This document shows positions 7,518-41,312 of a stretch of DNA of 64,000 nucleotides, piece by piece. The stretch spans positions 435,430 to 499,429 of the forward strand of contig NW_003314322.1 of the NCBI RefSeq assembly GCF_000143415.4, in the 5' to 3' direction. Under the pieces are notes generated by a model. The model had not been told where the DNA came from. It searched no databases and saw only the letters and a program-made list of their open reading frames with translations. Each line of letters starts with the position of its first letter. The stretch's first letter is position 1. The DNA comes from Selaginella moellendorffii. Taxonomy: Eukaryota > Plantae > Lycopodiophyta. Both the position numbers and the translations under genes were made by a program.

Positions 7518-7835
7518 CTGATCTCTCCTCTTCTAAAGAAAACCCACATATATAACTTATATAAAATCCACAGTCTCCGGCTCCTTCACATAGGTACAAG
7601 GAAAAGGCTGTGTTGCGTCCTCTATACATTTCACATGTACGTATGTACCTCTTCCTCTTTGCCTCCGTCTCCGAAAAATTGAAGGCCCGGCTGCCGGCGC
7701 GTCGCGTCGTCTCGCTTCAAAGCCCACTTTACCGATGGATCCAAGCTGCCTTCTCAGCCGGCCTCGCACCCGGCTCATCACAGCAGCACCGCATGCATGC
7801 TGGTTGTCCGCCCGTTTGTGAGTTAGATAGTACAC

Positions 7836-9726
7836 TCATCCTGCAGTGCACTCAATCAGGTGCCCACACGACAAGCAGGCAGGCGTGGCTTACCTGTTTT
7901 CTGAACCGCAACCCACACCTGCTTCTGCACGTAGCACCAAGAACAAGAATGAGCCTTTGGCACCGACATAGAACCCTACCTCTGTGCAGCCGAAGGGTGT
8001 TGACGCTGCACCTCCCCTCTTGGCAGCCACATGCTCAGAGTCTCTAGGACCCTTCCGACGAAATGCACCTGATGAAGCAAAGCCAGCGAGTTAAACAAAT
8101 CAAACCACCGGCTAAGGCTTGTCTACCGTTTTCAACAGCACCATTTCTCCCGTCCGTCTCGTTGTCAAGGTCGCTTCCCAGCCGGGGCCTGGTGTCGCAC
8201 TTTACATCTCCAGGATCACCCTCTGCACGTGTGCGGAGCGTGATAAACAAGCAAGATGAAGATCTCAACGTCTCACCAGAATCCATGGAATCCAGGCGTC
8301 GACGAGGGGTCCAAACAGGACGGTCAGGCCGATCCTTATTTCTCAGCCTCCGACCATCCGTTGTTGCGCTAGAATCTGCTTCCGCCACGGATTGCCTCGC
8401 AGCCTGCAACTTGGACGCCCTGTAGCCCGAATGCTTGTACGTTGAAGGCGACTGCCCAGGAGATACCGGGGGGCGCCCACGTGAATTGTATCCGGAATCC
8501 TGCAAGGCTTGCTCTCAAAACCCACTGCAGGAAGACAAGACAGCTTACAGTCTTGTCCTTGATCGGCCTACGGGTGTGTCTTAGCGCATCTGAGTCCACC
8601 GGCTTGGGATCACCCTCGCCTGCACGTGAAGAATGTTAACAAAGATCTCAGTAACTCCGCTTCAACCTGCTGGTGTTTCATCTGCCTCTTTATAATGACC
8701 ATTCTCGTCCCCTGCTTCGCGGTTCTGCTTCTTTTCCTTGAACTCCCGTTTCTTGTGTTCCCGGCGCACATACGTGGGGGAATCTTTGGCATCTGCTGGC
8801 GGCTGAAAGCACACCCGTAAGTCACAGACGTAATTGCACAAGCGGCAATCATTACCACAGCCTTTCCCTTATCACCACGCTTCTGGATGACGAAGCCCGA
8901 AGGTGGAGGCCCCATGATAGAACCAGCGCGAAATCCTGCTTTTGCTGCTCTCTGTGCATGAAGTGTAAGAGTGTCCGCTAAAGCAGATCAATGCAATCTC
9001 TACCTGGGCAGACTTGGCTGCTCGTTTCTGGCGGACATACTCCATCAAGGGCGTAACTATAACACCTTCTCTGGACGAGCCTGGGAACAAAAGGCACGGT
9101 ATAGTGTTCGCATGAGAATCACATGAAGAAACCTGGCCTTTCCAGCTGGACATCGGCACTCGGCAGAAGCTCGGCTGCTTTACCCAACGTGTCCACAAAC
9201 TCCAAGTAATCCGGGTCTGTCCAGCAGTGTCGCAACACAAATGCCTTGTCAATCGAAAGGTGAGGTACCTCTCAGGATGCTTCCTTCGCGACCGTCCTTC
9301 TTCACTCGCAAATCCGGCACGCGTTGGTAGGGTGCGTACTCCACCATGGCTTTATACTGCGAGCCTGCAAGCTTGACCATTTGGTAAGACCGTGAAAAGG
9401 AGGCGCCCCCACCTTTCTCGTTCACAAAGACATGTCCATGGAAATCCTCATGGAAAGCAAGCACGTCCTCTGGCCTCTCGAACTCGATATAGGCGCGAGA
9501 GTGGATTTGGTTTCTGTGGCTGCAAAAGAAAGGAGGAACCTCTAAACCAGCTCAAGGGAGAAAGCAAACGCGGAATTGGGACTCACGTCGATTTCCCAGG
9601 CCGGAACAGCATCCACAGGTAAGGCCTGGCAAACCTGGTTTGGATCCGAGACACCAAGGCGTCTTCCGAGAGTGTGGGAGGCAGGCGGCGGACCACAACC
9701 TTGGTTCGCGACAGGGGATCCCTCAT
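7836..9726 (-). CDS. UPF3: Nonsense-mediated decay factor UPF3, multi-exon (3' end approximate)
   Basis: MRDPLSRTKVVVRRLPP; SRAYIEF; FHGHVFVNEKG; AMVEYAPYQRVP; KDGREGSI; VTPLMEYVRQKRA; RNKDRPDRPVWTPRRR; C-terminal QKQVWV. Confidence 0.9.
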
Positions 9727-9943
9727 CGCACACACGCTACTGCTCTGCCACTCTTGCTGCTTGGCTAGCAGTGATGAGTAAGCTCCCGCCGCCGCATACG
9801 CTCCCTTGGCCTGCCACTGCTTCTTGTCGCGCTCCCGACCCATCCTTCGGCGGCATCGTCCCGCTCCAAAACCCTAGCCCTTCCCCTACACTCTCAAACC
9901 CTAATCCCCTACTTTTATCTTTTGCGAGTCGAACCCTTTGTTT

Positions 9944-11976
9944 CTACACAACAACGTTTATCTCCCCGATTATATTGACGAGCCTGCCGCTGTAGAGGCG
10001 GGACAGGGCCTCCTCCACGCTGCGCTTGAGCTCTCGCGTCTTGGAGACGAGCTCTTCCTGATGCCAACCCATGCACACGCACAAGCACGGTCAGATTCTC
10101 GTGTGTGAGCCGCCGGAGCGGCACCTACCTGCTTGGGCCATGACGACGACAAAGCGTTCCGAAGCTCCACCTTCTTGTGCTCTACATCCCTCAAGCTGTT
10201 GAGACACTTGGCCTCGCTCTGTTTCTTCTCCTTGAGTGACGCCTCTAGCCTGTCCACAAACCTGCAAAGCAAATCCAAGCAAGCCGTCGCCCACAAAATA
10301 CGCGCTACCCGTACCTCTCCGACGTTAACATGAGCACCAAGTCTCTCGTCCTGCTGCTCGTCACCAAGTCCAGCGCTACGGAGATGTCGCCCCCCATTTC
10401 TTTCAAGACCTGGGAGCTGTATTGCGGTAAAGACGCCGAGGCAACTGCCTGTATCTGGCTCTGCAGTGCTGCTGTCGCACTGTTGTCCAGCTCCTCCACT
10501 CTCTGAACAAGAAATGCTCTCACCTGCAAAACAAAGCAAAGCTTTTGCACGTTAATACACGAGAAACAAGCCAAGGGGCTCACCTCAAGGAGATCACTCA
10601 GAAGATTGTTTCGATACTGGGAGTCCACCAGGCGACAAAACGGAGCAAGAGAAGAGCCATAGCCTTGGACTGCCGAACCAGCCTTTTCGAATCCCAATGG
10701 ATCCTCGTGACCTTCAGCACCCTGTTCCACGTCAATATCCCACACGATTCCCGCGCTCTCCTCGTTGTCGTCACACTTGGACTCCACTAGCCTTGTGTCG
10801 GCCAGATCTATATCCCATTGTATCTCGTCAGTTTCCAGCTGAGTAGCAGCCTCAGGTAGCTGGCCACACTGGACGCCTTGTGCGCCAGGCACTCCTGCTG
10901 CAGGATCAGTGTTATCATGGGGAGGAAAGTCGGTCCCGACCTCCAACGGAGTGTCCCGAACATCCTTCAAAGCTGCCAGAAGGACCGAGCCTTGAACCTG
11001 CAAGGGCGGCGGCGAAATGAGAAGAGCAAGCGTTGCAAGCGCTTTTCACCTGAGCGTGCGTGTGAGCAAACGAGGCATAGACCTCATAGAGGTGCACGGC
11101 GTCATCAACTCTGCGACGACAAAGGATGTCCTTGAGAGTGGAGAGAATCCCAGGCAAAGAGCTGACGCTGGCCAAGAGCTCGCTCCTCACGTTCACTCCC
11201 TGGCACATCGAATGTCAGCCACAAGCGAGGGCGGCGGGAACACAAGTTACTGCGATGCCAAGCTCCCGGCAGGCGTGTTGGTACTTGGAAGCCGATGCAA
11301 GGGCATTGCGCTTGAACTCGGCCTCTTTACGCTCCAGGTCTGCCAGCTGCTGTTGCAGCCTGGCGATCTGCTTCTTTACAAAGGGGCTGCGACGCAAGTC
11401 AGTGGTGGAGCAAAGCTGCTGAGGCTTACATGTCGTAATTCACGTTGTGGAGCATGAGTTGCGCGGCCTCGCCCAGATAGAGATTGTCTTTCTCGTAAGC
11501 ATGCACAATGGCGTCCCATTCCCTCTGCGTGGAAGGTGAGAAGTGTAGCTAGAGTGCATTCCCATACCCCTGGACCGGACGCGGCTAGCCGGGCAAAGAC
11601 ACCCTTGTCTGGTTGGGCGGCGCTTGTGCTGAGGGCGATGTCCCGGATCCTGCGTGCTTCCAGGTATCCCACAGCTGCCATGCCACCGAGGAGAGAGCCT
11701 GTCAAAGGGCGGGGGGGAGTGCGACGGATATACTCACACTCTGGGCTCAAGCTCAGCAGCCATGGGTCGCCCTGCTTGGGCAGGCGAGCAAACGCCGGGG
11801 CGATTCTGGCACGGACCTGCGCGAGTTTCTTCCTCCACTCGCCATGCATCCAGCGGCGATCAACGAGCCAATCTGCGCGCGCAGCCAGCTAGTGGGTCAA
11901 GCAGAGGGCTCAGAGCGTACGCACCCGCTAGCTTGGCGTAGGCGATGTCAATGGGCAGCTCGCGCGATCCATCCAT
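9944..11976 (-). CDS. CDK5RAP3: CDK5RAP3/C53 (UFMylation/ER-phagy-associated protein), multi-exon
   Basis: [16 protein letters not shown]; [12 protein letters not shown]; [13 protein letters not shown]; [16 protein letters not shown]; C-terminal [17 protein letters not shown]. Confidence 0.9.
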
Positions 11977-12115
11977 CCCTGCTTGCCTTGCCCTAGGCCT
12001 AGGTGTAAGGGGAGGGGGGGGTCCTGTTTTTAGGGTTGCGCAGGAATGCGGGGGCGAGCTGCAAGGGCAGGGCGGACACTTCTCGGTAGCTGAGACCGGC
12101 GGGCTGCCCAGTTTC

Positions 12116-15100
12116 ATGTCTCAGAAGCGCAGGCTGGTCAGCCTCAGCAGCAGCAATACCCCTGGCGGCTGTGCGAGTGGCGGCGGCGGCGGCGGCGACT
12201 CCCCCTCCACCATCATCATGTCCGCCACCAAGAAGCCCAAGTCACTCGAGTCTGCCGCCATGGACAAGAATGGGGTGGAAGGCTTGAGCTCGGAGCAGGG
12301 CATGGTTGTGGATGTCAAGGCGACGGGCCACGGGCTGAGCGTGGCCAGCCCCGTCACCGCAGTCGGCCTCGCCGGCGGAAGCAACAGCACCGGGACAACG
12401 GCCAATCTCAGCCGCAAGAAGGCAACGCCGCCCCAGCCGACCAAGAAGCTGGTCATCAAGCCCTTCAAAGGTATCCATTCCATCCTTCAAAGCCTTTCCT
12501 TAAACCCCTGTCGCATTTCTGGCAGACAAGCCCAAGCTGCCGGCCAACTTTGAAGACGCTACCTGGGACAAGATTAGAGCCGCCGTGAGCGCCATCCACG
12601 TAAAGCAGCCCGTCTCTTGTAGTCTCGAGCAGCTCTATCAGGTATCGTATTCGTTCTTCTCCTTCAAAATCTTCTGTTTTGCTTCATCGGGTGTGTCTCA
12701 GAACGTGGAAGATCTGTGCTTGCACAAGCTTTCGGGAAACCTGTACCAGCGTCTGCAACAAGAATGTGAAACGCACATTTCCGCCAAGCTGAATGCTTTG
12801 GTCGGCCAGAGCCCTGATCCCGTCGTCTTTCTCTCCCATGTGGAAAGATGCTGGCAGGATCACTGCGACCAAATGCTCATGATAAGGAGCATTGCGCTCT
12901 ACCTTGACCGCACCTACGTCATACAAAACTCCAGCGTGCGCTCACTCTGGGACATGGGCTTGCAGCTCTTTCGGAAGCATCTCACGTCTTGTCCGGAGGT
13001 TGAGCACAAGACAGTTACTGGGATACTGAGGCTCATTGAGAAGGAAAGGTACGCAAAGCAGTGATAGACATCGAGGAGCACTCTTAACTATCTTTCTGCA
13101 TTGCTCAGGACGGGGGAAACTGTTGATCGCACACTTCTTAAGCATCTCTTGAGAATGTTTAGTGCGCTTGGAACATACAGTGAAAGCTTTGAGAAACCAT
13201 TTATCGACTGCACGGCTGAGTTTTACGCGGCTGAAGGAACACGATACATGCAACAGACTGATGTGCCTGACTACCTTAGGCACGTAGAGGTATGCAGGTT
13301 TTCTGCTGTAGCGCTGGTGTTGATCCTCGAATGCTGAATTATAGGCCAGGTTGCACGAAGAGAACGAGAGATGCTTGCTTTATCTGGACGCCAACACTCG
13401 TAAGCACTTGATATCTACCTCAGAGAAGCAGTTGCTTGAGCGCCATTCTCCCACCATTTTGGATAAGGTTCTTCTTTTCCTTTCGTACGCAACGGCTTAC
13501 TTTCGCGGCCTTTGCAGGGTTTTGGAATGCTTATGGACGCAAATCGTGTCGCGGACCTTCACCGTATGTACCTTTTACTTGCCAGAGTCGGTGCACTGGA
13601 GTCTCTAAAGCAAGCCCTTAGTGCGTACATCAAGGCAACTGGTCATAGCATTATCGTGGACGAGGAGAAGGACAAGGACATGGTTTCTACGCTGCTGGAT
13701 TTCAAGGCCCGGCTTGATATGATCTGGGAGGAAAGCTTTTCGAAGAACGAACCGTTTGCAAACACAATCAAAGAGGCGTTTGAGCATCTTATAAATTTGA
13801 GACAGGTTGGTAATACTTTTACAACAACGTTGTTATTTTTTCTGAGTTTTGTTCTGTGCTGATTTTAGAACCGACCTGCGGAGCTCATTGCTAAATTTAT
13901 AGATGGGAAGCTAAGAGCTGGGAACAAAGGAACGTCTGAAGAAGAACTCGAGAGTATGCTTGACAAAGTTTTGGTCCTTTTCAGATACATTCAAGTGAGG
14001 CTACTCTTTATCTAGAATAGGTTTTATCTGACTCTTTTCTTTGATTTTTGCAGGGTAAGGATGTCTTTGAAGCATTTTACAAAAAGGATCTGGCAAAACG
14101 CTTGCTATTGGGCAAAAGCGCATCTATCGATGCTGAAAAGTCCATGATTTCGAAGGTACTTTTTCATACTTGACTAGTTTCAGCGTTAAGCTTTGTTGTG
14201 TTCCAGCTAAAAACTGAGTGTGGTAGTCAATTTACAAATAAACTCGAAGGAATGTTCAAGGTACGCCTGTATTTTTTTGTATCCAATCAGCATCTTTGCC
14301 GAGCATTGAGTTCCCAGGACATTGAACTTTCAAGGGAAATAAACGAGTCCTTTAAGCAATCCTCACAAGCCAGGACAAAGCTACCAGCTGGAATTGAGAT
14401 GAATGTGCATGTGTTGACCACTGGGTATGAGCAGATCACTTGGTTTTTGCTATTTGACGCCCTTGCATGCACGCAGGTATTGGCCTACGTACCCGCCTAT
14501 GGATATTCGTCTTCCTCATGAACTCAATGTCTATCAGGTGCCTCGTGTTCTGGCTATCAAAATTCGCGTTTTGATTTAATTGTCATTTCTCGCAGGACAT
14601 ATTCAAGCAATTTTACTTGAGCAAGCACAGTGGCAGGCGGCTGATGTGGCAGAATTCTTTGGGTCATTGTGTTTTGAAAGCCGAGTTTCCCAAGGGTAAG
14701 AGGGAACTATCTGTTTCACTATTTCAGGTGAGCTTCCTTTCTGAGCGGTGGTGTGGAAGTTCTAAGCTAAAATTCCCAGACGGTGGTACTTATGCTTTTC
14801 AACGATTCATTAAGGCTTAGCTTTCAAGACATAAAGGACTCAACGGGTATTGAAGACAAAGAGCTCCGCAGGACTCTGCAGTCCTTGGCTTGCGGCAAGG
14901 TTCGAATTTTGCAAAAGGTGGGCACGGAAATCTTCTCTTTAGCTAGACTCATGTTGAGCTACCAGCAACCCAAAGGGAGAGAGGTGGAGGACGACGACGT
15001 GTTTACGTTCAATGAGGACTTCACGGCTCCTTTGTTCCGGATCAAGGTTTTGGACATGCCTAACGCGAAATTGGCCGTCCTCATCCTCCTTTGTTTTCAG

Positions 15101-20967: not shown

Positions 20968-23134
20968 ATGTGGAGAGGACCATCCTCTCTCTTTTGTAGG
21001 TATGTAGCATCTGAAGCTGCCAGATTTTCGGTCCATGTAAGTACGTTTTTTTATCTTCCCCTAGCTCTCACTGGGTTCTTCTGTTTTGGGCCAGCAATCC
21101 GAGGGAGCTATCCAGGAGTTTGACAAGCTGCGTGACAGTGGGGTTGCAGCAAGCACCTACATTCTCCTTGCTTCGCTCAAAGCGTGTTCCAGCTCCAGGG
21201 ATATACAGGCCGGGATGAGAATCCATGCATACGTGACGGAGAGTGGGGACGACCGGGATTTGACTGTAGCCAACACGCTTGTGTATATGTACGCCAAGTG
21301 CGGGAAAATGTGGGAGGCTCGAATGGTGTTTGACAGTATGGCGCAGCGGTCCTTGGTTTCGTGGAACGCGGTCATGTTTGGCTACGCCGAGGCTGGAGAT
21401 GCTGGACAGCCACTACATTTACTTCGGCAGATGCAGGCGGATGGCTTCCGTCCAAACAGCCTGACTTACATGGCGGTGCTCAAGGCGTGTGCAGCCTGTG
21501 GTGCAGAACAGGGTAAAGAGCCGCCTCAGCTCCTGCTACTTGAGACAGGAAAGGCTATCCACAGTGAGTGCCGAGAGTGTGGGCACGAAGAAGACCCCAA
21601 GGTGGCGAGCACCCTGGTTGACATGTACGCCAAGTGCAGGAGCATGGTGGACGCCCGGCGGGTTTTCGACGGGATGAAGCATCGGTCGTTGGTGGCGTGG
21701 AACTCGCTGCTTTTTGGATACGCGGACAGTGGACAGGGAGAACTGGCACTCCAGCTGTTCGCCCGGATGCAAGATGAAGGCCACACACCAGACGCAAGAA
21801 GCTACGTTGCTGCAGTCAAGGCCTGTGGCTGCTGTGCTGAGAAAGAAGAATGGAGGCAAGTTGGTGGAAGTCTGGTGGTGAAGCTAGCGTGGCTGGACAA
21901 GGGCATGGCTCTGCACTCCCAGGTTTCTCGTTGTGGCGACGAAGGCAACACCATAGTCGCCAACACCCTGCTGCACATGTATGTAAGCTGTGGGAGCCTT
22001 GAGGACGCTAGAAAGGTTTTTGACAAGATGCCACGGCACTCGGTTCTGTCTTGGAATGGTGTCATTGCTGGGTGCTGGGACAGGGGTGATCCTGAGCAAG
22101 CGCTCGAGATGACGGCCTCGATGCAAGACTACGGCCTCACGCCCAATGCTGCGACTTACATTGCCGCATTGAAGGCTTGCGTGAGGATTGCGGGCAGGGA
22201 TGGCCTTAGCAAGGGGCGAGCCGTGCACGCCCAGGCCAAGGCAGCGGGGCTTGAGGTGGACAGGCGGGTCTCAAGTACGCTTGTCAATATGTATGCCAAG
22301 TGCGGGAGCATGGATGATGCGTGCCGGGTGTTCGACGGTATGATGTTCCATGATGTTGTGTCGTGGAATGGGTTGATTCTGGGATATGTAGATGTGGGAG
22401 AGGCTGCCAAGGCACTCGAGTGCTATGCGCGGATGCAGCAGCAGGGATCAAGGCCGGATGCCCTCACTTTTGTGTCCGTTCTCAAAGCCTGTGCCCACCT
22501 CTCTCACCTCGAGGCTGGCAAGCGAGTTCACGAGCATCTGTGTAGTCGGGGAGTGGAACAAGAGTTGACGGTGGCCAACTCTTTGGTTGATTTCTATGGC
22601 AAGGCCGGAAGCATGCATGAGAGCCGTGGCATCTTCGAGTGCATGGGATTGCAGAGGGATGTAGTGACGTGGAACGCTTTGATGGCGGGATATGCACAGC
22701 AAGGGGACGCACAGGAGGTGGTCCGCTTGTTTGATCGGATGCAACAGCAGCCAGATCTGCGGCCCAACAGCATTACGTTCTTGTGTGTGATCAAGGCCTG
22801 CAGTCATGCCGGGCTGGTGGACACGGGCAAGCACTGCTTCGATCTCATGCAGCTGGGAGCCTGCCTTGTGCCTGGGATCGAGCATTACAGCGCCTTACTG
22901 GATCTCTTGGCCCGTGCAAACCGACTAGACGATGCGCTAGCTTTGCTCACAGGGATGCCCTGCGCGCCGGATCAGGCCATGTGGATGACGGTCTTGACTG
23001 CTGCTCGCAAGTGGAGTAACCTCGAGGTTGCAAGGGTAGCTTTTGAGTCGATTGCGAGAATGAGAGAGGAAGACTCCGCTGCATACGTCGTTTTGGCCAA
23101 CACGTATGCGGCAGCTGGCGATGTCCCGGATTGA
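20968..23134 (+). CDS. PLS-class pentatricopeptide repeat protein ending in the E domain (no DYW)
   Basis: Repeated (N/S)TLVxMYAKCG...ARxVFD...VSWN motifs; ACSHAGLV, EHYSALLDLLAR, AYVVLANTYA. Short first exon (ATG 20968) joins via intron 21037-21064. Confidence 0.92.
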
Positions 23135-28929: not shown

Positions 28930-30466
28930 ATGGCTGGCAGCCCATCCAAATTCAAGCGAATCTGCGTCTTTTGTGGGAGCAGTAGCGGCAGGAAGAGGAG
29001 CTACAGCAATAGTGCTCTGGAGCTGGGCAAGGAACTGGTGCGGAATTGGTGGAAGTTGATTTGATGCCTCGAGCTCACTCGTGCTGCCGTGTGTGCGTGT
29101 GCGTGTGCGTGTGTCAAGGTCGGGCGCAAGATCGATCTGGTGTATGGCGGTGGGAATGTGGGGCTCATGGGCCTCATTGCGCAGGCTGTGCACGAAGGTG
29201 GAGGCCATGTCACTGGGTAAGTTCGCTTTCTCCCCCCTTGTTGCACCCAGCCGCGTGGTGCATCCATCTCTTCGATGCATTCATTAAGGCGCTTGGAACT
29301 TTGCGAGCGGCTGACAATGTGATCACAGAAAAGCCCCTCCAAACAGAGACAGCAGCACACGACAGGGGGATTTTGTGTGTGATCATTGAAGCTTTTACGA
29401 GTCAGATTCATCGGCATTCCATCCATCCCGTGGCACTAGAGTAGAGCATGGCGCACACGTCGTTTAACTATTCCTTTTCATGTCAGTGTACTGATTGATT
29501 TTGTGCCTTGTACGTGCAGGGTGATTCCGAAGGCGCTCATGTCTAGCGAGGTGAGTGATTTCTCTTGCGTTGCGCTCCTCCTTAAATATCATATCCGCTC
29601 TGTGCCGCGCATGTTCTGTGTTGGATCCAGCTGCTGACCATGATCTGCTGCTCGTTTGCTTTTTGTTTTGTTTCTTCTGCGTTGCCAAGTTGTGGCTTTT
29701 CTCATGCCCCTCCGGCGTTCGCTACTTTCGTGCCCGCTCACCTCTCGTCCGGTTGAACAGATATGCGGCCAAACGGTGGGAGAGGTGCGGCCGGTTGCCG
29801 ATATGCACCAAAGGAAAGCCGAGATGGCACGCCAAGCCGACGCCTTCATTGCTCTTCCTGGTATACTGTCACGCAGCGTAGCCTTCATGTGCTTGACATG
29901 CCCCCAATCTCGTTGCTTCTTTCAGGTGGCTACGGAACTTTGGAGGAGCTGTTAGAGGTGATAACATGGGCTCAGCTCGGAATCCACGACAAGCCGGTAA
30001 AGCGATTGGTGCTTATTGTTTGTGTGAGGTCTAAGCTTTGGAATGTTTCTTGTGTGTGTCAGGTGGGATTGCTGAACGTGGATGGCTACTTCAATCCGCT
30101 GCTCAACTTGTTTGACAAGGGAACCGAGGAGGGGTTTATCCAGCCATCTTATCGGCAGATAGTTGTTTCCGCGTCGACAGCTCACGAACTTGTGAATAGA
30201 TTGGAGGTACGTTCCCTCCTTACAACACCGCTTACTTCCCACCTGGTGTCCGGGATCCTTTCATCCTCTTTTGTCGTCACAGCCTTCTAGAACGCAACTT
30301 GCTCGTGTTTCTTTTGTTTCTTGTTTGTCAAATAGCTCCTTACGGAAAACTGGGCTTGTTGTTGTGAATGCAGGAGTACGTTCCGATGTACATCTGTGTT
30401 GCCCCCAAAGAGACATGGGCAAGGGAGAAGCTCGTCTTTTCGAACGTGCCAAGCCTGGCGTCATGA
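28930..30466 (+). CDS. LOG: Cytokinin riboside 5'-monophosphate phosphoribohydrolase (LONELY GUY)
   Basis: [12 protein letters not shown]; [14 protein letters not shown]; DMHQRKAEM; [16 protein letters not shown]; [10 protein letters not shown]. Confidence 0.96.
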
Positions 30467-30830
30467 CTCGCGCGTAATATTATACCAGCTTCATCATGGT
30501 GTACAAATATCCCGTTGCTGGAACGCCATACATAGCTACGCCTTTTAGGGGAGCCCCAATGCATGGACTTTGACAAGCCCAAGAAAAAGTCCATTCACAC
30601 ACACACACACACACTCACCTTCTATAACCCCTTCCATCCATCAGTCTGTCCATCCTTTAAATTTCTTTGTTGCCCATTGGCAACCAACCTCTTTGTTTCC
30701 CCAACCTTCTTTCACACAATGATCCTGGTGTTGCTAGGAAGGAACAAGCACCAATGACACGAAGGGGGGTAGGCAGCAAACTTGATGACCAGCCAAAGGC
30801 TTAAAGTTTTTTTTCTTTTTTTTGTCATAT

Positions 30831-30856
30831 AATATATATATATATATATATATATA
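30831..30856 (+). repeat. (AT)n microsatellite
   Basis: Direct inspection. Confidence 0.85.
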
Positions 30857-31054
30857 CTACACGCAATGAAGATCACAAAATTACAAGATTTTTTATTAGG
30901 GCCCACGCAGCGCATTGTTCAGCTAGAACGGTGCTTTAGCTTGAAGCAGGGGACAACCCGGCTCGATGGGCACTCAACCTGCGCTGGCTGGCTGTCTTCG
31001 CTCCCTTTTGGCTTGCAAGGCCTTGGGCACAGCCACTGCAACCGCCAGCTTTTA

Positions 31055-32215
31055 TTATTCCTCTGCCGCGCCTGATGCCGCTGTGACCTTTGTTGGGAGG
31101 CAATTGAGATGCTTCCTCATCATGTACTGGTCCTGCGCAGCTGGACGCCGTGTCGTAAAGAAGCCCTGCACCATCTTATCCAGCCTCACTAGATGGTGCG
31201 CCAGCCGCTCCTCGCTCGCAGCCGTACCGCGACACGGGCGTTGCTGCGGCATCTGGTTGACGACATCCTCGGCCACCACTAAAGCCCTGGTCGCGTTCGA
31301 CATCCAAACCTGCTCGAACTGCAAGCCGACATTGCACTCGTATTTGGCCTCTGTCTCCTGCCTCTTCCTCATCCTTACCCCCCTGCCCCTCCGCCTCTTC
31401 TCCATGTCCCGTGCATGCCGTCGCACGTCCTCGCTGCTCGTCACCCTGATGGTATTCCCCAGGAACATGGGCGACGCCAGCGTGATGTTGTCGTAGTCGG
31501 CATGGACACGGCGGAGCTCCATGCTGGTGGCGAGGAAGGCCGTAACGTGATCTCGTATGTGCCGAACCAGCGCCTGTGGGCCCTGAACCCCGACGAGGAG
31601 CTGGTCCATGTACCGTATGTACTTGACGCTGTGGATGCCATTCCCTCTGTCCCCGCACCGCTCCGCCCTGGGCGTGCAGTTTGCTTGCATCACCCTCTGC
31701 ACCTCCCTGTCCGCGAAGGTGAGGAAGATGTTGCACAGCAGGGGCGTCAACGCGTTGCGCCGGATCCCCTTGCCCTGCTGGGGATAGAAGCACATGTCCT
31801 TGATGAGACCCACCAGCGCCCTGTCCCGGATTCGGGCGATCAAGCTCTTGGTGAGCAGGAAGTGATCCAGGGACTTGACGCAGTGCAGTATGTGCAGCTG
31901 GAGATACCATTCCACGCCCTGCCACGTGCTCTTTATCTGCCGGAACACGAGCTGGCGGCCGCTGCCCGGCCTCCAGCCCAGCGCCTGGTCTGCGAACCGC
32001 GGCTCAAACAGCCTCTCCACCACCATACGAACAGCCTCGTGGACGATGCGGTCCGTCTGGGCACCAATCTCCACGCGCCTGCTCTTGCGGACTCCAAACC
32101 GCGCCAGGGTTGCCTTGCCATAGGCTAGAGCGCACGCGGGGCCCGTCTGGAACCGGCAGTGCTCCAGCCCGAGGACACCCACCACCACCACCACCCGCCT
32201 GGCGCACCGCAGCAT
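31055..32215 (-). CDS. Intronless nuclear group II intron reverse-transcriptase/maturase-like protein (degenerate RT), 386 aa
   Basis: RT2 DRIVHEAVRMVVERLFEPRF...GWRPG; RT3 WQGVEWYLQLHI...SLDH; RT4 LTPLLCNIFLTFAD; RT5 YIRYMDQLLVGVQG; RT7 FLGNTI. Confidence 0.82.
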   Translation of the reverse strand: MLRCARRVVVVVGVLGLEHCRFQTGPACALAYGKATLARFGVRKSRRVEIGAQTDRIVHEAVRMVVERLFEPRFADQALGWRPGSGRQLVFRQIKSTWQGVEWYLQLHILHCVKSLDHFLLTKSLIARIRDRALVGLIKDMCFYPQQGKGIRRNALTPLLCNIFLTFADREVQRVMQANCTPRAERCGDRGNGIHSVKYIRYMDQLLVGVQGPQALVRHIRDHVTAFLATSMELRRVHADYDNITLASPMFLGNTIRVTSSEDVRRHARDMEKRRRGRGVRMRKRQETEAKYECNVGLQFEQVWMSNATRALVVAEDVVNQMPQQRPCRGTAASEERLAHHLVRLDKMVQGFFTTRRPAAQDQYMMRKHLNCLPTKVTAASGAAEE

Positions 32216-32279
32216 TGTTGGTATTGCGGGGAAGCCCTCGTTGTTGACAAAACACTTACATAAAACCTCTCTACCACCT

Positions 32280-34188
32280 CTACGCGGAGGCGTCCACTCC
32301 CATCTTGTGGCCCAAAACCCCCAGCTGGCGGCTCAACTCCGCGCCCGTCACCACCTCCGTGCAGCCATAAATGATGTTCTTGCCGGGTTGGCACCTCTGG
32401 CCCAGCTCTACAAGGCTCCCATGCTCCAAGTAGTTGCCACCGCCAATCATGAACACGACAGCCTCCTTGAACGGGCCCTTGGTGTGAATTCCCGGCGCAG
32501 AGCCTTTGGGAGCACGCGGATCCAGCGTCATGTAAGACTCCAGCTCGGGAGCCAGCCTTGCCTCCATCAGAGACTCCACGGTTCGTGTAAGAGCCAATTG
32601 TCTTCCCGCGGACAGAAAGTTCTTGACGCCCGCTGTCACTGTTGTGGAGAGCCAGTCCACCAGGTTGCTCTTGCTGCCCGTGTTCACTGACGCCAGCGAG
32701 ATGTTCAAGGACCGTATCCTTTTCACATAAAGAAACGATGTGACGTCCACCCGGGCCTCCCGAAGTGCTGCTTCCACAGATTCGATCTCTGCGCCCGCTG
32801 CGGATTCCATGGACAGCAGATAGACGAGGCCAAGTCGCAATTTATCGTCGCTCGTACCCTTCCCCTTGAGGGCTCCCAGCAGCGCCGTCTTGTCAACCGT
32901 CCCCTTGGTCAGCATGTCCTCCTCCAGCGAGTAGAAGCCATCCAGATTCCGGCTCTTTATCTCCCCCAAGAGCGCCGTCGCGATGTTGGTGTGCTTGTCA
33001 ATCATCTTCTTGCGCTCCGTCAGCTCCGGGAGGGAGTTGACGGCGCTCATCAGGTGCTTGGTGTTCCCCAGCAGCTCTTGCTCGTCAAACGGCACGTCGG
33101 CACGCCCCCCGGTTCTCCTGTTCACCTCCTCCACGTCCTCCTTGTACTTTTTCAGCTGGGCCTCCACTTCTTCCGCCACCTTTGGGAAGGCGGCAGCGTT
33201 GTTGGCCACCCAGAAGGTGTCCGACTCATCCAGCTCGAACGACTTGGCCGCGCCCTTGCCCGCCACGCCGGCAGCCGCGCCCTCCCCCTGAACCACCACG
33301 CGGTTGAGCTTCATGCCCAGGACGTCGTGCACCAGCGGCCTGTACGTCCACACGTGCTGCACGCCCACCGAGAGCTCAAAGTTCCTGTCGAAGATGCAGC
33401 AGAGGGGGCGCTGGAACGAGGTGCCAAAGTGGCCCGGCTCCGTGAAGAGGTTGTTCCTGGAGACGAGGTGGTCTCTGATCCTGGCGTCCAGCTGCGTCGC
33501 CACCATCTCCGCAGGCCCGCCCCGCGCACAGCGCAGCACCGGCACCACCCCGAGCGTGACGAACACCGAGAAGAGGCCGTTGACAATGGCGTCCACGGCG
33601 GTCTCGATGTCCTTGTCCTGGGCGCTAGGATCGTTGAGCCGGACGTACGTGTCGGGCAGCGCCAGCGAGAACATGGCCGTGTCGAGCGTGACGAACTCGG
33701 CGTACTGGTCAAACACCTTGGAGAGGCGGTGCATGCAGTCGTTCTTGAGGGCCCCCATGGCGAGCTCCTCGAGCAGCGCGCGCGGGAGCGACGAGGAGAA
33801 GTTGAGGTGGAAGGACTCGTAGACGCCACGGGCGGCGTCCTGTATGATCCTGTGGATGTTGGGCGCGGTTGGCTGGACAAAGTAGATGGCGGGGGCGTCG
33901 GGGATGTTTTGGCGCTCCACGTCGATCATGAAGCAGATGGTGACCCCGTGCTTGCGCAGCTCGTGGAGGTGGATGAGCGGCGACAGGATGTCCCGGCAAA
34001 ACTTATCCACCACAAGCACCTTGTACACGGCGTCGTCGCCCGTGCCGCCCGCGGGGAGCGGCTGGTTGAGGTTGAGCATTCTCTTGATAACATCTGCGCG
34101 CAGCACCACCACGCTGCTCAGCTACGCCACAAAACCCAACCAGATCGAAGCTCTCACCTAGGTGCTTGTGGCGCAGCGACATCGCCAT
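32280..34188 (-). CDS. SLY1: Sec1/Munc18-family protein SLY1, short first exon plus large second exon
   Basis: MAMSLRHKHL/DVIKRMLNLN; YKVLVVD; LRKHGVT; PAIYFVQPT; HVWTYRPLVHD; LPELTERKKMIDKHTNIAT; VFMIGGGNYLE. Confidence 0.95.
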
Positions 34189-34262
34189 GGCTGCCTCGCT
34201 CCGCTGCGCGCCAAACAAACCCTAGATCTATCTTCGACTGGCTAGGGCTTTGGCCATTACTA

Positions 34263-35476
34263 ATGTCAGCATTGGCGGGGTGCGTGCTCCTTCGCCCCTA
34301 CACCCAGCCCCCCAAGGAGCTGCTTGTTCGCCCCCGGGAGGCGTGGGGAGCGCGGCGCGTGCCGCCGCGCCTCCTTGCTCCCCGTGGAATGGGAAGGCGC
34401 TCCAGCAAGATCGCTGCCAGAAAGGTGGGCTTTTTTTTTTTTGCGCGATAGATACTAGTGGTCAAGGAATGCTATGCTGCCTGCGTGAGCAGGGAGCGCA
34501 AGCGGCAAGGAAGATGAAGAGGAACCAAAGAATTGGCAAGCAGATCGCAAAAGCGTACGTGCACCAGATTGTTGTGTGTTCCCGAGTCGGAGGTTTTGTG
34601 CTTGCACAGCGTTCGCGACGGCGGGCCAAACCCTGCGTCCAATCTGGTGCTGGCGTCGCTGCTGCAACAGGCCAGGGAGTGCAACTATCCCAAGGAGCAC
34701 ATTGACAAGCACCTGAGGAAGGCCACGGACAAGGATCAGCAAGACTACACCGAATGCATCTACGAGGTGCTGCATTTCACTGTCTCCTGTTGTGGCGCCA
34801 TGCTTCAAACGTCTGCGTTTCTCAGGCTTATGGCTTTGGAGGCGTTGGGCTTGTCATGGAGGCCCTCACAGACAACCCCAACCGAGCGTTTGCCAGCATC
34901 CGGGACGTGGTGAAGAAAAGTGGAGCCAAGATGGCGGACTCCGGTTCGGTCATGTTTGGATTCAAGCGAGCAGGAGTAATTGCGGTAAGGCCGGGCAAAG
35001 TGGATGCCGACCACCTCTTGCTTGCAGCAATGGACGCGGGCGCGGAGGATCTCATCGGCCCTGAGCCCTGCCATGAAGAAGATACGGACGAATCGGCAGC
35101 AGAGGAGAGGTATAAAAACTCTCTCCCCCCATCTCTTGCAGCGACCGCTCTCTCTTCGCCTCTCATCGGCTTGGCCCGCCAGACACTACAAGGTTGTGAT
35201 GCCGGTTGAGGAGTTTGGAGCCGTCAAGACGAAACTGAGCGAGGCCGGAATCAGCATGGACCTGGAAAGCTCTGGGCTCGAGTTTTTACCCGTGGCACCT
35301 GTGGAGGTGGGCTTCTCTCTCTCTCACTTTTGCTGCCTCGCTAGGTTGTCAAGCATCGAGTGTTTGAGCAGGTGGACGATGAAGCAATGGAGCTCAACAG
35401 AGCCTTGACAGACATGTTACTGGAGCTCGAGGACGTGGACGCTGTTTATTCCACGCAAAAACAAATAAAATTTTGA
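34263..35476 (+). CDS. YebC/PmpR/TACO1-family protein with organellar-type N-terminal extension, multi-exon
   Basis: MGRRSSKIAARK; GGPNPASN; YEAYGFGGVGLVMEALTDNPNR; MADSGSVMFGFKRAG; LLELEDVDAVYS. Confidence 0.9.
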
Positions 35477-35502
35477 TAAACCCTACCTAGCTTTGCCCTA
35501 GA

Positions 35503-37103
35503 ATGCGAGAAGGGATGTTCCCTCCAGCCGCAGCTCCAGAGGTTATGCGCGCCGCCGAGAAGGACGAGCAATACGCTTCCTTCGTCTGCGAATCGTGCTA
35601 CGATGCGTTTCGCCACGCATTTGGTATGTGCCAAATCGAATTGCAGTGCAGCTCATCCCATCCATGTCAACCAGGAACTCGGCTTGCTGTGGCCTACCAG
35701 AATGAGGTACAGAGCTTTCCTCTTTTGACACCACCGCGGCCACGAGTTGTTTCCCTTTCAGACCAAACTTGCTGGCCGAGCCCTCTACTACCTCCTGACC
35801 ACGGGGGCGGGACTCCAGACCTTGGGCGAGGAGTATTGTGACATCTTGCAGGCAAGAATCTTGCTGTTCTCTGTAGCTTTATGTTGGACTTGTTGCGTAT
35901 CAGGTGGCAGGGGCATCTGGCCTTCCCCCGTCTCCTGCTAGACGTGTTCTTCTCATCTTCTATCAAGCGATTCTCCCATATCTCGGAGAACGTCTCAGGT
36001 AATCAGGGAGATTATTGGTAGTTCTCATGCTACGTGTGCACTTCTCTCAGCTCCAGAGCAGCTGCACGAGGAATCCTGTTAGCAAACGAGGAGGGGAGGC
36101 GCGCACGCTCCTCGCTCTCGGGTGGAGAAAATACACGAGCTACAGCAACCAGTAGTCTTTCTTACACGGGGCTGCTGCAAAAGAGTGATCAAGTGCTCAA
36201 GTGGCTGCAATGTTTATGGTCTGCTGCCCTGCAGGGCTGGGCTGTGGTATGAATAGATTTATCGTCACAGCTGCTTGCTAAGCACTTGTAACTGCAGATT
36301 CTGCCTTCCTTGCGCGAAGCTCTTCTACTTCTTTCACGAGCGAACTTGATGCTCTTCTACTTCGATGGTAACTTGCGAGCTCATTTTCTTCATCCTTCAC
36401 TTTGACCGTCCTTGTCTTCAGGAATATATTATCATCTTGCAAAACGAGCAGCTCGAATACGTTACATCCATATGGGAAAGGCAGCGCAGCAAAGGCCCAG
36501 GTTTTGCGGAATGCTATCGATTGATATTACAGCCATGATCGTGGAAATTTGCAGGTACCACATGCTCGGTATGTTCCTACTTCTTCAACTATCGATTTTA
36601 AGCGGGCATTGGCTACGACGAAGTATTCTACCAGCTGTTGCTCTATCGATGCAATCACCCTCAGTTAACAGTGCCTCTCCTCCCGGAGGTGAAGTTTTTC
36701 CTTTATTTCTTTCCAAATATTTATAGATCTTGTCGTAATACACTATCAGCAACTCATCAAAGGATAACTATTCTGGATGAGGACGGAAACATGCCTCAGA
36801 GAAGCTCATTGGAACTAGAGGTGAGAATCAAACAGTTTGTGTGTAGAAAATAATCCCGTCGTGCAGAAGGAGGCTTCTTCGACGAAATGCCCACTGTGCT
36901 TAAGTCCCCGCCAAAATCCCACGGCAACGCCTTGCGGTCATGTGTTTTGCTGGTATGGACACGCTTTGGGTGTTGATCCTTCTACGGTTTTGACTTTCAG
37001 GACTTGCGTCGCGGAATGGTGCAATGAGAAACCCGAATGCCCACTCTGCCGAGCTCCAGTACTGCACTCTAGCCTTGTCTGCGTTTACCATGCAGATTTC
37101 TAA
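35503..37103 (+). CDS. PEX10: Peroxin-10 RING E3 ligase, multi-exon
   Basis: [19 protein letters not shown]; [12 protein letters not shown]; GIYYHLAKR; [27 protein letters not shown]...CPLCR. Confidence 0.95.
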
Positions 37104-37262
37104 ACAAGAGTGTGCTACGCGCATGCTTTCGAAGCGTCATTGTTGACTGTCATCTTTGAACCAGTCCCAACATTTGTCCTTTGTATCGTCCGGGGATATG
37201 AGGTGCACGCTCTCTGGTTTTTAACTAGTGTTTTGATTGCTCTGGATCTGGTGCAGGCAGTG

Positions 37263-39248
37263 ATGGAGGTGAAAGCGCTTGTGCTGGCATCCCTGCTAAG
37301 TTTTCTTCGTCTTGCTGCGGGACAGAGCTTTACACTGAACTCAGCATCCTTCAGTTCAGAGGAGCGTGGTTATTTAAGTTCAGGGGATGCCACTTACGAG
37401 CCGTCATGCGGCTGTGTGCACCTGACAACAAGCGAGTGGAATCAACAGCCTGTCAACTCTTCCGGCCGGATCGTCTACAGGCACCCCTTTGATTTTCGTG
37501 ACGACTCGCTGCGCGGCGTGGCCTCTTTCAACACCTCTTTCACTTTCCAGATCGTGCGAGTTTTCGAGGATGGCAACTCTGGGATTGGACCTGGGGCCGG
37601 AATGGCGTTTATGCTGGTTCCTGAAGCAAACATGAGGCTACCGAAGAACAGCTATGGGTTTTACATGGGGCTTTTGAACGAAACCATGCAAGGAAACAAC
37701 TCGACGCATATGCTAGCTGTGGAATTTGACGATGTGCTCAACACAGATGTTGGAGATCCCAGCGCCAGTCACGCAGGGGTAGATATCAACAGCGTCATCT
37801 CGGTCGCCACTGCCAACTTGACAGGAGAGTTCAACCTGACGGCAAACTATACGCTGACTGCTTGGATTGAATACGACGCTACGACGGACTGCCTGGAAGT
37901 TAGGATGGCAAGCAACAGTACGGAAAGGCCGCGCGAGTTCCTCCTCAGGACGAACTTCAGCTCCCGGGGCTGGAAACTGTCGGGTGTATTGAATCAAGAG
38001 CGGATGTACGTGGGGTTTTCGGCAGCAACGGGGCAGGATTGTTTCCAGTTTCACAGGCTGTATGCCTGGAATTTTACAATGTCCCGGGTGACGAAGTGCA
38101 ATGGCGTGGACTGTGCAGTGGTGAAGGTTCTGGTCGCGCTTTCGGTGGCTCTTGCTCTGGTCTTGATGGTGGCACTTGCCATGGTTGTCTTTCGACGTAC
38201 CAAAAAGATCGCCTACACCATTCACATGCCAGAGTCCGTTGGCATCACTCGGTTCTCATTCAAGGAGCTTCGGTCTGCCACCAGAGGATTCTCCAAAAAG
38301 CTGCTGCTGGGCCGCGGAGGTTTTGCCAGCGTCTACAAGGGCACTCTAAAGGATAGAACCGCGGTCGCGATCAAGTATTTGAACAGGGACAAGGCGGAAG
38401 CAGACTCGGAAAGCAGCATCGCACAGTTTGTCGCGGAGATACGAGTGATTGGTCAGCTCCGGCACCGGAATCTCGTGGGACTCAAGGGATTCTGCTTCGA
38501 GAGAGCAAAGTTTTGCCTCGTCTACGAGTACATGCCAAATACGAGCTTGGACAAGCACCTGTTTGATCCGAAGGGCAAGCTGGAGTGGCATCAGAGGCTG
38601 GCTATCTTGAGAGGTGTAGCGGAAGGTCTGGCATTTCTTCACGAAGGGTGGCAACAGCGCGTTCTCCATCGAGACGTCAAGGCAGCCAATGTTCTCCTAG
38701 ACGCATCTTTTGGTGCCAAGCTGGGGGACTTTGGCTTCTCCAAGCTGGTAGATCACGGAACGGGCAGCTGGTACATGACAGCAGTGGGAACAACGGGATA
38801 CATGGCACCGGAGCTCTACACGGGAAGAGCAACCGAAAGAAGCGACGTCTACAGTTTTGGGATCCTGGCTCTGGAAGTGGTGAGCGGCCGACGAGCTACG
38901 TCGCTGAGCAAAGACAAGAACGACGAGGACAGCGTGCTACTTGACTGGGTGCGGGAGTTGGCTTGCGATGGGCGGGACATGGAAGCCGTGGATGCCAGGC
39001 TCCATGAAGCAGCAGCAAGAGCGGAGGACATAGTTCGCGCAATTCGCCTGGGACTACACTGCTGTCAGCTGGAGCCGTATAAGCGGCCAACCATGCGGGC
39101 GTGCTGCCAACTTTTGCAGTCGAATGCTGCGTGCCTGGAAGCGCCTCCGATGCCAGCCATCGTTTCCAGCCCTTCCGTCAGAGGCTTGAGCCTCGACGGC
39201 AGCGGCGAAGGCTTCAACGTCGATGATGATGCAAATCACTCGTCATGA
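37263..39248 (+). CDS. L-type (legume) lectin receptor-like kinase, intronless
   Basis: Signal peptide MEVKALVLASLL; lectin ASFNTSFTF, LAVEFD, MYVGFSAATG; TM helix; kinase GRGGFASVYKG, HRDVKAAN, DFG, GYMAPE. Confidence 0.95.
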   Translation: MEVKALVLASLLSFLRLAAGQSFTLNSASFSSEERGYLSSGDATYEPSCGCVHLTTSEWNQQPVNSSGRIVYRHPFDFRDDSLRGVASFNTSFTFQIVRVFEDGNSGIGPGAGMAFMLVPEANMRLPKNSYGFYMGLLNETMQGNNSTHMLAVEFDDVLNTDVGDPSASHAGVDINSVISVATANLTGEFNLTANYTLTAWIEYDATTDCLEVRMASNSTERPREFLLRTNFSSRGWKLSGVLNQERMYVGFSAATGQDCFQFHRLYAWNFTMSRVTKCNGVDCAVVKVLVALSVALALVLMVALAMVVFRRTKKIAYTIHMPESVGITRFSFKELRSATRGFSKKLLLGRGGFASVYKGTLKDRTAVAIKYLNRDKAEADSESSIAQFVAEIRVIGQLRHRNLVGLKGFCFERAKFCLVYEYMPNTSLDKHLFDPKGKLEWHQRLAILRGVAEGLAFLHEGWQQRVLHRDVKAANVLLDASFGAKLGDFGFSKLVDHGTGSWYMTAVGTTGYMAPELYTGRATERSDVYSFGILALEVVSGRRATSLSKDKNDEDSVLLDWVRELACDGRDMEAVDARLHEAAARAEDIVRAIRLGLHCCQLEPYKRPTMRACCQLLQSNAACLEAPPMPAIVSSPSVRGLSLDGSGEGFNVDDDANHSS

Positions 39249-39378
39249 GCTGTTTAGATCTGAAGATGTGTTTTGGACGACGCCGTTGGGTGATGAACAG
39301 TGAGCATTTGTCGCGTTTGAGAGGCTTCTTCTTACCTTGCAAGGGGTTGTATTGCTCGCCGTAATCACAGGGACGGCT

Positions 39379-41312
39379 ATGGCCTCGCCATTGCAAGCCG
39401 CCAAGATGCCATGTCTGCTGTGGAGTAGCTGGACAACCTTGCATTCGCGCGCACAAGAGAAGCAGCAATGGCGTTCTTGGAGAAGCCAGAAGAGCTTTCG
39501 GCCCAAAGCGGTGGAGGTTAGCAACCGCTTGTCAGCCTCACTGATATCTCCTTGCCAAGGCCAGCCACTGTTTTGCTTGATAGCATCCTGTGCCGCGCTT
39601 GCTCAAGTAAGTCTAGTCTTGACTTTGCAAGAGGAGATGTTGTTGCATGGACAGGTATTGGAAGGACGAACAAAGTGGGGTGAGCATCTATCTTCGCCGG
39701 TGCTGTCAATGGCGTCTGGAATGCTTCTTTCGTCCCTTCAAGTCATTCCTACAGCCGCACCGGTCTACGAGAATGTAAGTTCTGGCTCTCTGTTTTTCTG
39801 CTAACATATTGCACGCAGGTACTGAAGATAGCGATGCCAATGGCGGTGGCACTCACTCTTTTGGAAACTGATGTGCAGCGGGCCTTCACAGATGCTGGTA
39901 AGAAGTCGCTACTTTTTTGTGTCTCGATCAATACCCCTAGGCTATCTAGTGGCATGGAAATGCGTTTGCAAGGTTCTACGCTCAAGGCCTTCTGGATCGG
40001 AGCCGCGGGAACGATACTTGGGACACTTGTGGCCTTTTGGATTGTTGGGAGGCATCTTGGACCTGATGGCTGGAAGGCTAGTATACCTGCAACTCCCGCT
40101 TGACTTTTCTAGAATTTCTCTTGTAGCAGATTGCGTCGTGTCTTTGTGCCAGTTATGTTGGTGGCAGCATCAACTATGCAGCCACTGCCCAGGTAAGGAA
40201 GTTGGTTTTTTTTTTTTTTCCTTTCTTTTTCTATCTTCTGACGATTTGGAAGACGAATATAAGGCGCTCGAGCTGAGCTCGGGGAGCACCCTTGCCGCTG
40301 GAATCGCTGCTGATAATCTTGCAATGGTTCTCTACTTCGGCATTATCATGTGGATACCCGCTGACACTCGGAGACCACCTCCACATATTACTCGAGGTTG
40401 GCTGAAATTCTTACTCTGTTTACGAAGACTGACTTGTATTACAGAGGAGGCTTCTGAACTTGACGCAAAACCAACAAGCGAAACAATCATCTTATCTCTT
40501 ACTGTCGCTGCTGCATCATGCACCATTGGCAACGCTCTCGCGGCACTTCTTCCCTCCACATTCGCAGGCAGGTCTCTTCAGCACGCTTGGATCACTCATC
40601 TAATTCTTGAAATGTTTCCAGGTTGTGGCTTGGCCATCATGGCGCTTGTGGCGTCTGCATTTTCAGCAGTTGCAGCGAGGGCGTGCCATTCCCATTCCCA
40701 TTCTCGTTCCGCAAGAGGCACCAGCGTAGCCGTGTTTGCGGGCTCTCAAGTCATTGGTGGCGCTCTCATGCTCCTCTTTTTCGCAGTGGTACGTACGATG
40801 CGCTTTTGTCTCCCGCGCGTCTAATCTTTCGAGAGCGTTTGCAGGTTGGTGCATCCTGCAGCATACGTGACGCCGTTTCAGCTGGCTGGCCTCTCTTCAC
40901 TTTTATCCTTCTTTTGCTCTTGGTAAGAGGCATGAAATCGAGCTCTCTCATCCCGTGACCCCGTGATTCGCAGACTCACCTGGGCTTTACACTCGGCCTT
41001 GGATCGCAGTGCAAGATCCCAATGCGCGCGGTACCTATACATAGGTTTCCTTTGGACGACGCTTCTAACTAGGATTGTCTTTCAGCTATTGGTTGCATCG
41101 AATGCTAATATAGGCGGCCCGGCAACCGCTGCGGCAATGGCGAACGCTCGTTGCTGGAAAGAACTGGTTGGTACACACACAATCAACATCTCTAAGCCTG
41201 TGAGTTGCAGGTTCGGCCTTCAATATTAGTGGGGACGCTGGGATACACGATTGGAACGGTCATTGGATGCGTGCTGGGAACAAGCACGCTGAGAACCATG
41301 ACCCCTTTGTAA
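39379..41312 (+). CDS. DUF819 (YjcL-like) multi-pass membrane protein, multi-exon
   Basis: AFWIGAAGTILGT; IASCLCASYVGGSINY; GIAADNL; LLFFAVVGAS; LVASNANIGGPATAAAMA; ILVGTLGYTIGT. Confidence 0.85.

Follow-up and report, generated by a model that had tools for sequence, protein, structure and literature searches.

Genomic location of the open reading frame

The open reading frame (ORF) studied here comprises 386 codons plus stop on the minus strand at 31055..32215 of the window, i.e. the 64,000 nucleotides of Selaginella moellendorffii DNA that were analysed. It is uninterrupted, begins with ATG and has its boundaries exactly at 31055-32215. Its product, with 44 kDa and a pI of 10.3, is predicted to be a maturase-derived protein with a dead reverse transcriptase (RT). 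The ORF is located on scaffold GL377626.1 of S. moellendorffii (assembly GCA_000143415.2) between a LOG gene on the plus strand (28930-30466, public gene calls on the scaffold) and its upstream neighbour, a gene of the SLY1/Sec1 family on the minus strand (32280..34188), which encodes 614 amino acids and has a 64-nt intron at 34094-34157 near its 5' end. Its place among ordinary nuclear genes agrees with the nuclear location assumed in an earlier note on this DNA. An L-lectin receptor kinase gene is another neighbour on the scaffold.

The stop codon of SLY1 and the ATG of the ORF are separated by a spacer of 64 nt (32216..32279, minus strand) that contains a mini-ORF (ATG-TAA) as well as a SNP, G>C, at 32230. 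Because gaps of 27-160 nt between coding sequences on the same strand are usual for the ordinary genes of this neighbourhood, the short distance to SLY1 is not odd. On the other side of the ORF, 30866..31054 of the minus strand was assigned to a 3' untranslated region (UTR), with AAUAAA hexamers starting at 31056, where the hexamer overlaps the stop codons, and at 30897. The RNA contigs stop here at 30906 or 30866, next to a masked (TA)n repeat.

Public gene calls on scaffold GL377626.1 were absent over 30466-32280, and an exact look-up in a collection of about 15 billion public proteins did not retrieve the product. When 1.8 billion cluster representatives were searched exhaustively with HMMER, there was no self-match, no orthologue from another species and no protein with more than 34% identity. 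Thus the ORF lacks an annotation, and no close relative is recorded.

The reverse transcriptase core

The ORF product was matched to the NCBIfam model of group II intron RT/maturases (TIGR04416) with an E-value of 5.4e-20 over aa 44-269 and to LtrA (5g2x) with 5.6e-18, and an HMM made from 100 matches scored it with 169 bits over aa 44-278. In the Pfam scan suggested by the earlier note RVT_1 reached only 22 bits, which is under its cut-off, and neither PF01348 (Intron_maturas2) nor PF08388 (GIIM) was matched. According to the HMM alignment, a fingers/palm core with RT1 to RT7 in order extends from aa 28 to 258 (31442..32134, minus strand). The note had listed subdomains 2 to 7; their order was correct, but RT1, a beta hairpin at aa 28-50 with the conserved Asp55, had been overlooked.

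The substitutions at the active site that had been read from the sequence were all seen in the alignments. The remnant of RT3 is LQLHI (31889..31903, minus strand) where the family has EgDI, and the catalytic aspartate is replaced by His108. The remnant of RT4, GIRRNALTPLLCNIFL (31721..31768, minus strand), has lost PQG, which is now IRRN due to the exchange PQ152-153RR, while the LSPLLxNIYL core is retained. RT5 reads YMDQ (aa 202-205; 31601..31612, minus strand) for YADD, i.e. it carries A203M and D205Q and lacks the second catalytic aspartate. Overall the ORF retains 35 of 61 family-conserved columns, i.e. columns with a conservation of 80% or more in 81 relatives, and the columns missed include catalytic and dNTP-binding positions. 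Since two of the three catalytic aspartates and the dNTP-binding PQG are lost, the ORF product is, judged by its sequence, unable to polymerise DNA.

The fold appears to be preserved. An AlphaFold2 model calculated with an alignment had a mean pLDDT of 77.5, with values mostly >90 over aa 50-290 and likewise over most of the fingers/palm core. Superposition by VIA-align on GsI-IIC RT yielded a Z-score of 20.3 (302 aa aligned, rmsd 5.7), that on LtrA a Z-score of 19.2 (316 aa aligned, rmsd 3.7).

The N-terminal leader, the basic helix and the C-terminal region

The position of RT0 is occupied by a leader of 27 residues (32135..32215, minus strand), which by composition is Arg-rich and acid-poor, contains a run of valines encoded by (GTG)5 and was modelled with a pLDDT <50. 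The first 45 residues of the ORF product include eight Arg/Lys and a single Asp/Glu, as expected from the first description of the N-terminus. The leader may be a targeting peptide. Its hydrophobic Val/Gly/Leu run could equally be read as a core resembling that of a signal peptide. RT0 itself is missing from the ORF, because the hairpin of RT1 is preceded by no more than these 27 residues of low confidence. A tblastn search upstream was also blank, and the coding sequence of SLY1 begins after 64 nt.

RT7 is followed by a basic stretch with a pI of 10.8 (aa 259-296; 31328..31441, minus strand), which the earlier note had taken for an insert. However, its sequence RDMEKRRRGRG... aligns to a homologous basic stretch that is conserved in the relatives and in LtrA, and it was modelled as a long helix with a pLDDT >90. 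Thus it is not an insert; sequence and model indicate an ancestral feature, which is probably the first thumb helix.

The remaining residues, aa 297-386 (31058..31327, minus strand), are located at the position of domain X and have a coding-type composition, yet no homology was detectable. An HMM of domain X (76 matches) did not report the true C-terminus of the ORF, and 2000 shuffled sequences reached 7.4 bits. Comparison of the C-terminus with a 10-sequence domain X alignment by hhalign yielded a probability of 0.1. A six-frame HMM search of 30300-31460 revealed no domain X remnant in any frame, nor did a tblastn search of the whole window with 31 relatives. Together with the missing Pfam match this bears out the initial impression that no domain X is recognisable. 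That domain X might be hidden by a frameshift or located on a 3' exon was ruled out by the six-frame HMM search, by tblastn and by RNA free of joints (see below).

In a MAFFT alignment aa 337-367 came to lie on the domain X core RGxxNYY. We do not regard this as homology, since neither the shuffle test nor hhalign lent support. AlphaFold2 predicted helices at approximately aa 335-355 and 360-370 whether or not an alignment was supplied, although at low confidence, and a single-sequence model of aa 255-386 consisted of helices only with a pTM of 0.36. Given the low confidence of the helices and the unsupported MAFFT placement, the resemblance of the C-terminus to domain X is positional only.

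As to the intron from which a maturase would originate, group II intron RNA was detected by Rfam neither in the whole window with the gathering score nor over 29500-33500 with E <=1, in line with the earlier note. Missing intron RNA at the flanks is what one expects of a nuclear copy.

Relationship to other maturases

The named best matches of the ORF were the Selaginella nuclear protein XP_024524942, mitochondrial maturases of Coleochaete and Pellia, and a 'maturase-related' protein of Zygnema. With XP_024524942 it shares 31% identity over 277 aa (E 4e-33). In phylogenetic trees the ORF was located outside a well-supported big clade of the remaining matches. In a quick tree it formed a group with XP_024524942 plus a Rhodosorus transcript (SH-aLRT 83), while a careful tree did not give a supported placement, owing to the long branch of the ORF (1.9-2.7 changes per amino-acid site). 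Constraining the ORF and XP_024524942 to form a clade cost 0.94 log-likelihood units and was not rejected (p-AU 0.44). Furthermore, the two have derived states in common, namely Ser to Ala in RT2, Y[M/L]D[Q/E]...VGV in RT5 and A[D/S]Y in RT6.

In view of the shared derived residues and the unrejected clade we prefer an old duplication, with a maturase gene already in the nucleus as its source, to a separate transfer from organelle to nucleus, and consider the duplication at least as likely. Of the derivation from an organellar maturase that the earlier note had proposed, the descent from the mitochondrial type is suggested by the best matches, while the separate transfer event is probably inexact. 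Word-index searches with XP_024524942 or with a 12-sequence profile listed 3-6 proteins and no angiosperm nMAT among them. The nuclear maturase set of S. moellendorffii is expanded (PMC3927076); reviews put the maturase loci of Selaginella at about eight, of which seven are nuclear and were newly found, several having arisen by duplication within the lineage (PMC3927076, citing Guo and Mower 2013; PMC10012718).

Codon composition and polymorphism

The GC content by codon position was 0.62/0.44/0.82 for the ORF, similar to 0.62/0.40/0.85 for SLY1. The pattern was not confined to the part with homology. It was 0.78/0.48/0.96 in the 27-codon leader and 0.64/0.44/0.72 in the last 90, non-homologous codons (p 4e-4), while the non-coding DNA downstream of the ORF was flat in this respect. 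Relative synonymous codon usage (RSCU) of the ORF and SLY1 correlated with 0.76 in frame, compared to 0.50 and -0.01 out of frame.

Of all point changes that the ORF could undergo, about 3% would generate a stop codon, and the chance that the frame survives 10% of neutral divergence is about 0.03. The frame is still open in spite of a terminal branch with the number of changes per site given above. All three SNPs of the ORF among the runs affect third positions and are synonymous (p 0.014 under neutrality); in SLY1 five out of five were synonymous. The single indel of the ORF is an in-frame polymorphism of 3 nt at 32179 in the (GTG)5 run. Thus neither the broken frame nor the lost codon-position structure that marks a pseudogene or a nuclear insertion of mitochondrial DNA (NUMT) was seen. 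The intact frame, the codon-position GC and the synonymous SNPs speak for a long evolution of the entire ORF, also of its parts devoid of homology, as a nuclear sequence that is translated. The case for present-day constraint is thin, as it rests on three SNPs, and the very long branch fits with relaxed constraint.

Transcription of the ORF

At least part of the sampled words of the ORF was present in 20 runs that name seven studies, and half or more of the words in 15 of these. Contigs of four runs (X1, X2, X4 and X9, each from another study) were aligned to 29300-34300. They carry four GT..AG junctions of LOG as well as the CT..AC junction of the 5' intron of SLY1, which identifies the runs as RNA. 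The whole ORF was covered colinearly in all four, from 30866 or 30906 to the ORF start, and the contigs contained no joints over 30866-34093. Thus the ORF is a single exon, as had been proposed, and no 3' exon is hidden. The earlier note had weighed its reading against an overlooked domain X and against an untranscribed insertion; RNA and all reading frames contained neither a 3' exon nor domain X, and the ORF is transcribed.

In the runs X1, X4 and X9 one contig extends continuously from SLY1 through the spacer into the ORF, and that of X4 includes the splice junction of SLY1. In X2 the two are on separate contigs with a depth of 25 for SLY1 and 8 for the ORF, and the break adjoins a SNP. Contigs cannot tell one RNA from two in this case. 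Given the bridging contigs, the RNA of the ORF may simply be the 3' UTR of SLY1.

Interpretation of the locus

A real, lineage-specific, RT-dead derivative of a maturase is the most likely reading of the ORF. We see an even chance that it is a real, unannotated nuclear protein-coding gene that descends from a maturase of the mitochondrial type, most probably as an old nuclear duplicate.

The strongest competing explanation is a transcribed relic, i.e. a truncated former nuclear maturase that resides untranslated in a long 3' UTR of SLY1 and has recently become free of constraint. Such a relic would account for the continuous contigs of X1, X4 and X9 and for the absence of any AAUAAA-type hexamer between the stop codon of SLY1 and the end of the ORF, the two hexamers of the minus strand being located at and beyond the ORF's own stop codon. 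It would also account for the loss of both ends of the ancestral protein, RT0 and domain X, for the long branch, and for the fact that no annotation pipeline called a gene here and no orthologue turned up among the 1.8 billion representatives. On the other hand, the frame is unbroken across all 386 codons, and captured non-coding DNA is not expected to display the host-like codon-position GC that was found even in regions without homology. The three ORF SNPs are all synonymous, and the family residues that are kept are structural, whereas the catalytic ones are lost. In addition, the separate contigs and unequal depths of X2 do not suggest a common RNA, and given the tight gene packing that is normal here bridging contigs are no proof of one. 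Taken together we regard the relic as possible, but on the doubtful side.

Alternatively, SLY1 and a functional ORF might share a dicistronic mRNA (SLY1-RT), with the ORF as a second cistron that lacks a promoter of its own and is translated by reinitiation or internal entry. The 64-nt gap on the same strand, the spliced bridging contigs in three of the four runs with similar depth in X1 and X9, the restriction of polyadenylation-type hexamers to the region after the ORF, and the coding signature of the ORF are in line with such an arrangement. Yet, the contigs are not evidence of single molecules, and ordinary neighbouring genes have equally small gaps on the same strand. Moreover, reinitiation after an ORF of 614 codons is inefficient in eukaryotic translation, which counts against a second cistron. 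We consider this arrangement unlikely.

That the ORF is the remnant of an intron ORF in a recent NUMT or a corresponding plastid insertion (NUPT), with no tie to a nuclear gene function, is hardly credible, because its maturase ancestry and a GC content of 63%, compared to 68% of S. moellendorffii mtDNA (PMC5654404), are set against the lack of flanking group II intron RNA, an identity of at most 34% to any protein, the absence of a maturase from the listed mtDNA gene set (PMC5654404), a codon-position GC like that of the nuclear neighbour SLY1, a frame that is open without RNA editing while the mtDNA needs 2,139 edits, and ordinary nuclear genes on both sides.

A possible function

If the ORF is a nuclear gene as we favor, its protein would be made from an intronless mRNA and might be imported into an organelle by means of the Arg-rich leader. 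As a basic accessory factor with a pI of 10.3 it could then bind organellar intron RNA by its fingers/palm surface, and a partner might supply the function of the thumb. The mtDNA of S. moellendorffii has 37 introns, the most of any known plant mtDNA. Group II introns account for 35 of these, and the 18 listed protein genes do not include a maturase (PMC5654404). Some of the 35 maturase-less introns would be candidate targets. Since this mtDNA is the richest in introns among those known from plants and no maturase is listed for it, S. moellendorffii is a fitting place for a derivative reduced to the RT core.

A more elaborate version would be a split maturase, where the RT-core-only ORF product and a separate thumb-only protein act in trans on the maturase-less mitochondrial introns, possibly with expression of the ORF as a second cistron. 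We deem this quite improbable; if true, it would be a step toward a spliceosome-like set of proteins. The ORF also adds a gene to the annotation of S. moellendorffii, and, if it is under coding constraint, it would demonstrate that the fingers/palm module may persist in a role of its own. If it were an untranslated relic in the 3' UTR of SLY1, it would be of minor interest.

Comparison with known maturases

The ORF product shares the fingers/palm fold with LtrA and GsI-IIC RT. In contrast to the ORF product, both are active, intron-encoded enzymes that possess RT0 and YADD as well as a thumb (domain X) and a DNA-binding domain, and LtrA has an endonuclease domain in addition. In LtrA, RT0 and domain X both contribute to intron binding. 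As the ORF product has neither, the canonical mechanism of a stand-alone maturase is doubtful in its case.

Q0R4Y3 of the liverwort Pellia epiphylla ('mat-free'/rtl type) is similar to the ORF in being a stand-alone gene outside an intron with a degenerate RT5 (YAGN), and both appear to belong to one broad clade of streptophyte mitochondrial maturases. Yet, Q0R4Y3 is encoded in the mitochondrion, consists of 801 aa and has retained domain X.

The angiosperm maturases nMAT1-nMAT4 (type I and II) are nuclear, derive from mitochondrial intron maturases, deviate in their RT or endonuclease parts and have lost mobility (PMC3927076). They possess N-terminal targeting sequences and are needed for the splicing of mitochondrial group II introns (PMC3927076). 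The ORF resembles them in its location on a nuclear scaffold, in a GC3 of 0.82 like that of SLY1, and in RNA contigs from four studies. However, domain X, which is conserved in nMAT1-nMAT4 (PMC3927076), was not detected in the ORF.

The S. moellendorffii proteins XP_024524942.1/XP_024518366.1 (LOC112344431, 760-788 aa) are, like the ORF product, nuclear-encoded and RT-dead, and they are of mitochondrial-type maturase descent, which is probable for the ORF product as well. In XP_024524942 (760 aa) RVT_1 was also matched below threshold, together with Intron_maturas2. It is annotated, twice as long as the ORF product, and has an N-terminal part of about 200 aa as well as domain X (PF01348, E 1e-12), whereas the ORF is devoid of either part.

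MatK and MatR finally demonstrate that degenerate maturases, on which splicing in plant organelles depends, persist as splicing factors without polymerase activity and mobility. They are encoded in organellar introns, while the ORF is nuclear and free-standing. All characterised plant maturases retain domain X while the RT part decays, and MatK and MatR combine degenerate RT motifs with a well-conserved domain X (PMC3927076). The ORF presents the opposite, an RT core without domain X. Measured against public gene models it would thus be new, a putative nuclear gene derived from a maturase by the inverse pattern of domain loss.

Gene context of the RT ORF

The RT ORF, an unannotated reading frame of 386 codons on the minus strand (31055-32215), lies in a crowded stretch of the window. 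It is convergent with a gene of the LOG family (lysine decarboxylase-like) on the plus strand at 28930-30466, in which joints in the RNA contigs confirm four of the introns (29548/29759, 29859/29925, 29995/30062 and 30204/30372). Between them, where their 3' ends come together, lie two microsatellites, (GT)n at 30587-30625 and (TA)n at 30807-30865.

On its upstream side the RT ORF is separated from the stop codon of the Sec1-family gene SLY1 by a 64-nt spacer, which holds a minimal upstream ORF, ATG-TAA, at 32257-32262 (minus strand). A G>C SNP at 32230 coincides with the point where the contigs of X2, one of the RNA runs, break. Codons Val8 to Val12 of the RT ORF are encoded by a (GTG)5 run at 32179-32196 (minus strand), and an in-frame length polymorphism of 3 nt in this run was seen in X1, another RNA run.

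Beyond SLY1 genes are packed extremely densely from 34188 to 39400 (6926-12117 of locus L002). The gaps between same-strand coding sequences were 27 nt from a TACO1/YebC-like gene to that of a Pex2/Pex12 RING protein, 160 nt from there to an L-lectin receptor kinase and 131 nt from the kinase to a DUF819 protein. The UTRs in this interval must be very short or overlapping.

Two further intronless ORFs were seen on the plus strand. The one at 21086-23134 encodes a PPR protein with an E motif of the type found in organellar RNA-editing factors. The other, at 59665-61125, encodes 486 amino acids; a Pfam search at E up to 0.001 gave no match for it, and no identical sequence was present in the protein collection.

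Further maturase-like proteins

SELMODRAFT_405974 (601 amino acids) is another degenerate maturase paralogue of the S. moellendorffii genome. It shares 55% identity with part of the nuclear maturase XP_024524942 and carries no precomputed Pfam domain, and its match to the maturase HMM is confined to the part from RT5 onward. The two proteins of this comparison, P0002 and P0167, are both encoded on one 4.14-Mb S. moellendorffii scaffold.

In the trees the long-branch Selaginella sequences cluster with maturase-like RTs of the red alga Rhodosorus marinus, a grouping that is possibly due to long-branch attraction. The alga expresses numerous isoforms of such long-branch maturase-like RT proteins (MMETSP transcripts P0077 and P0042).
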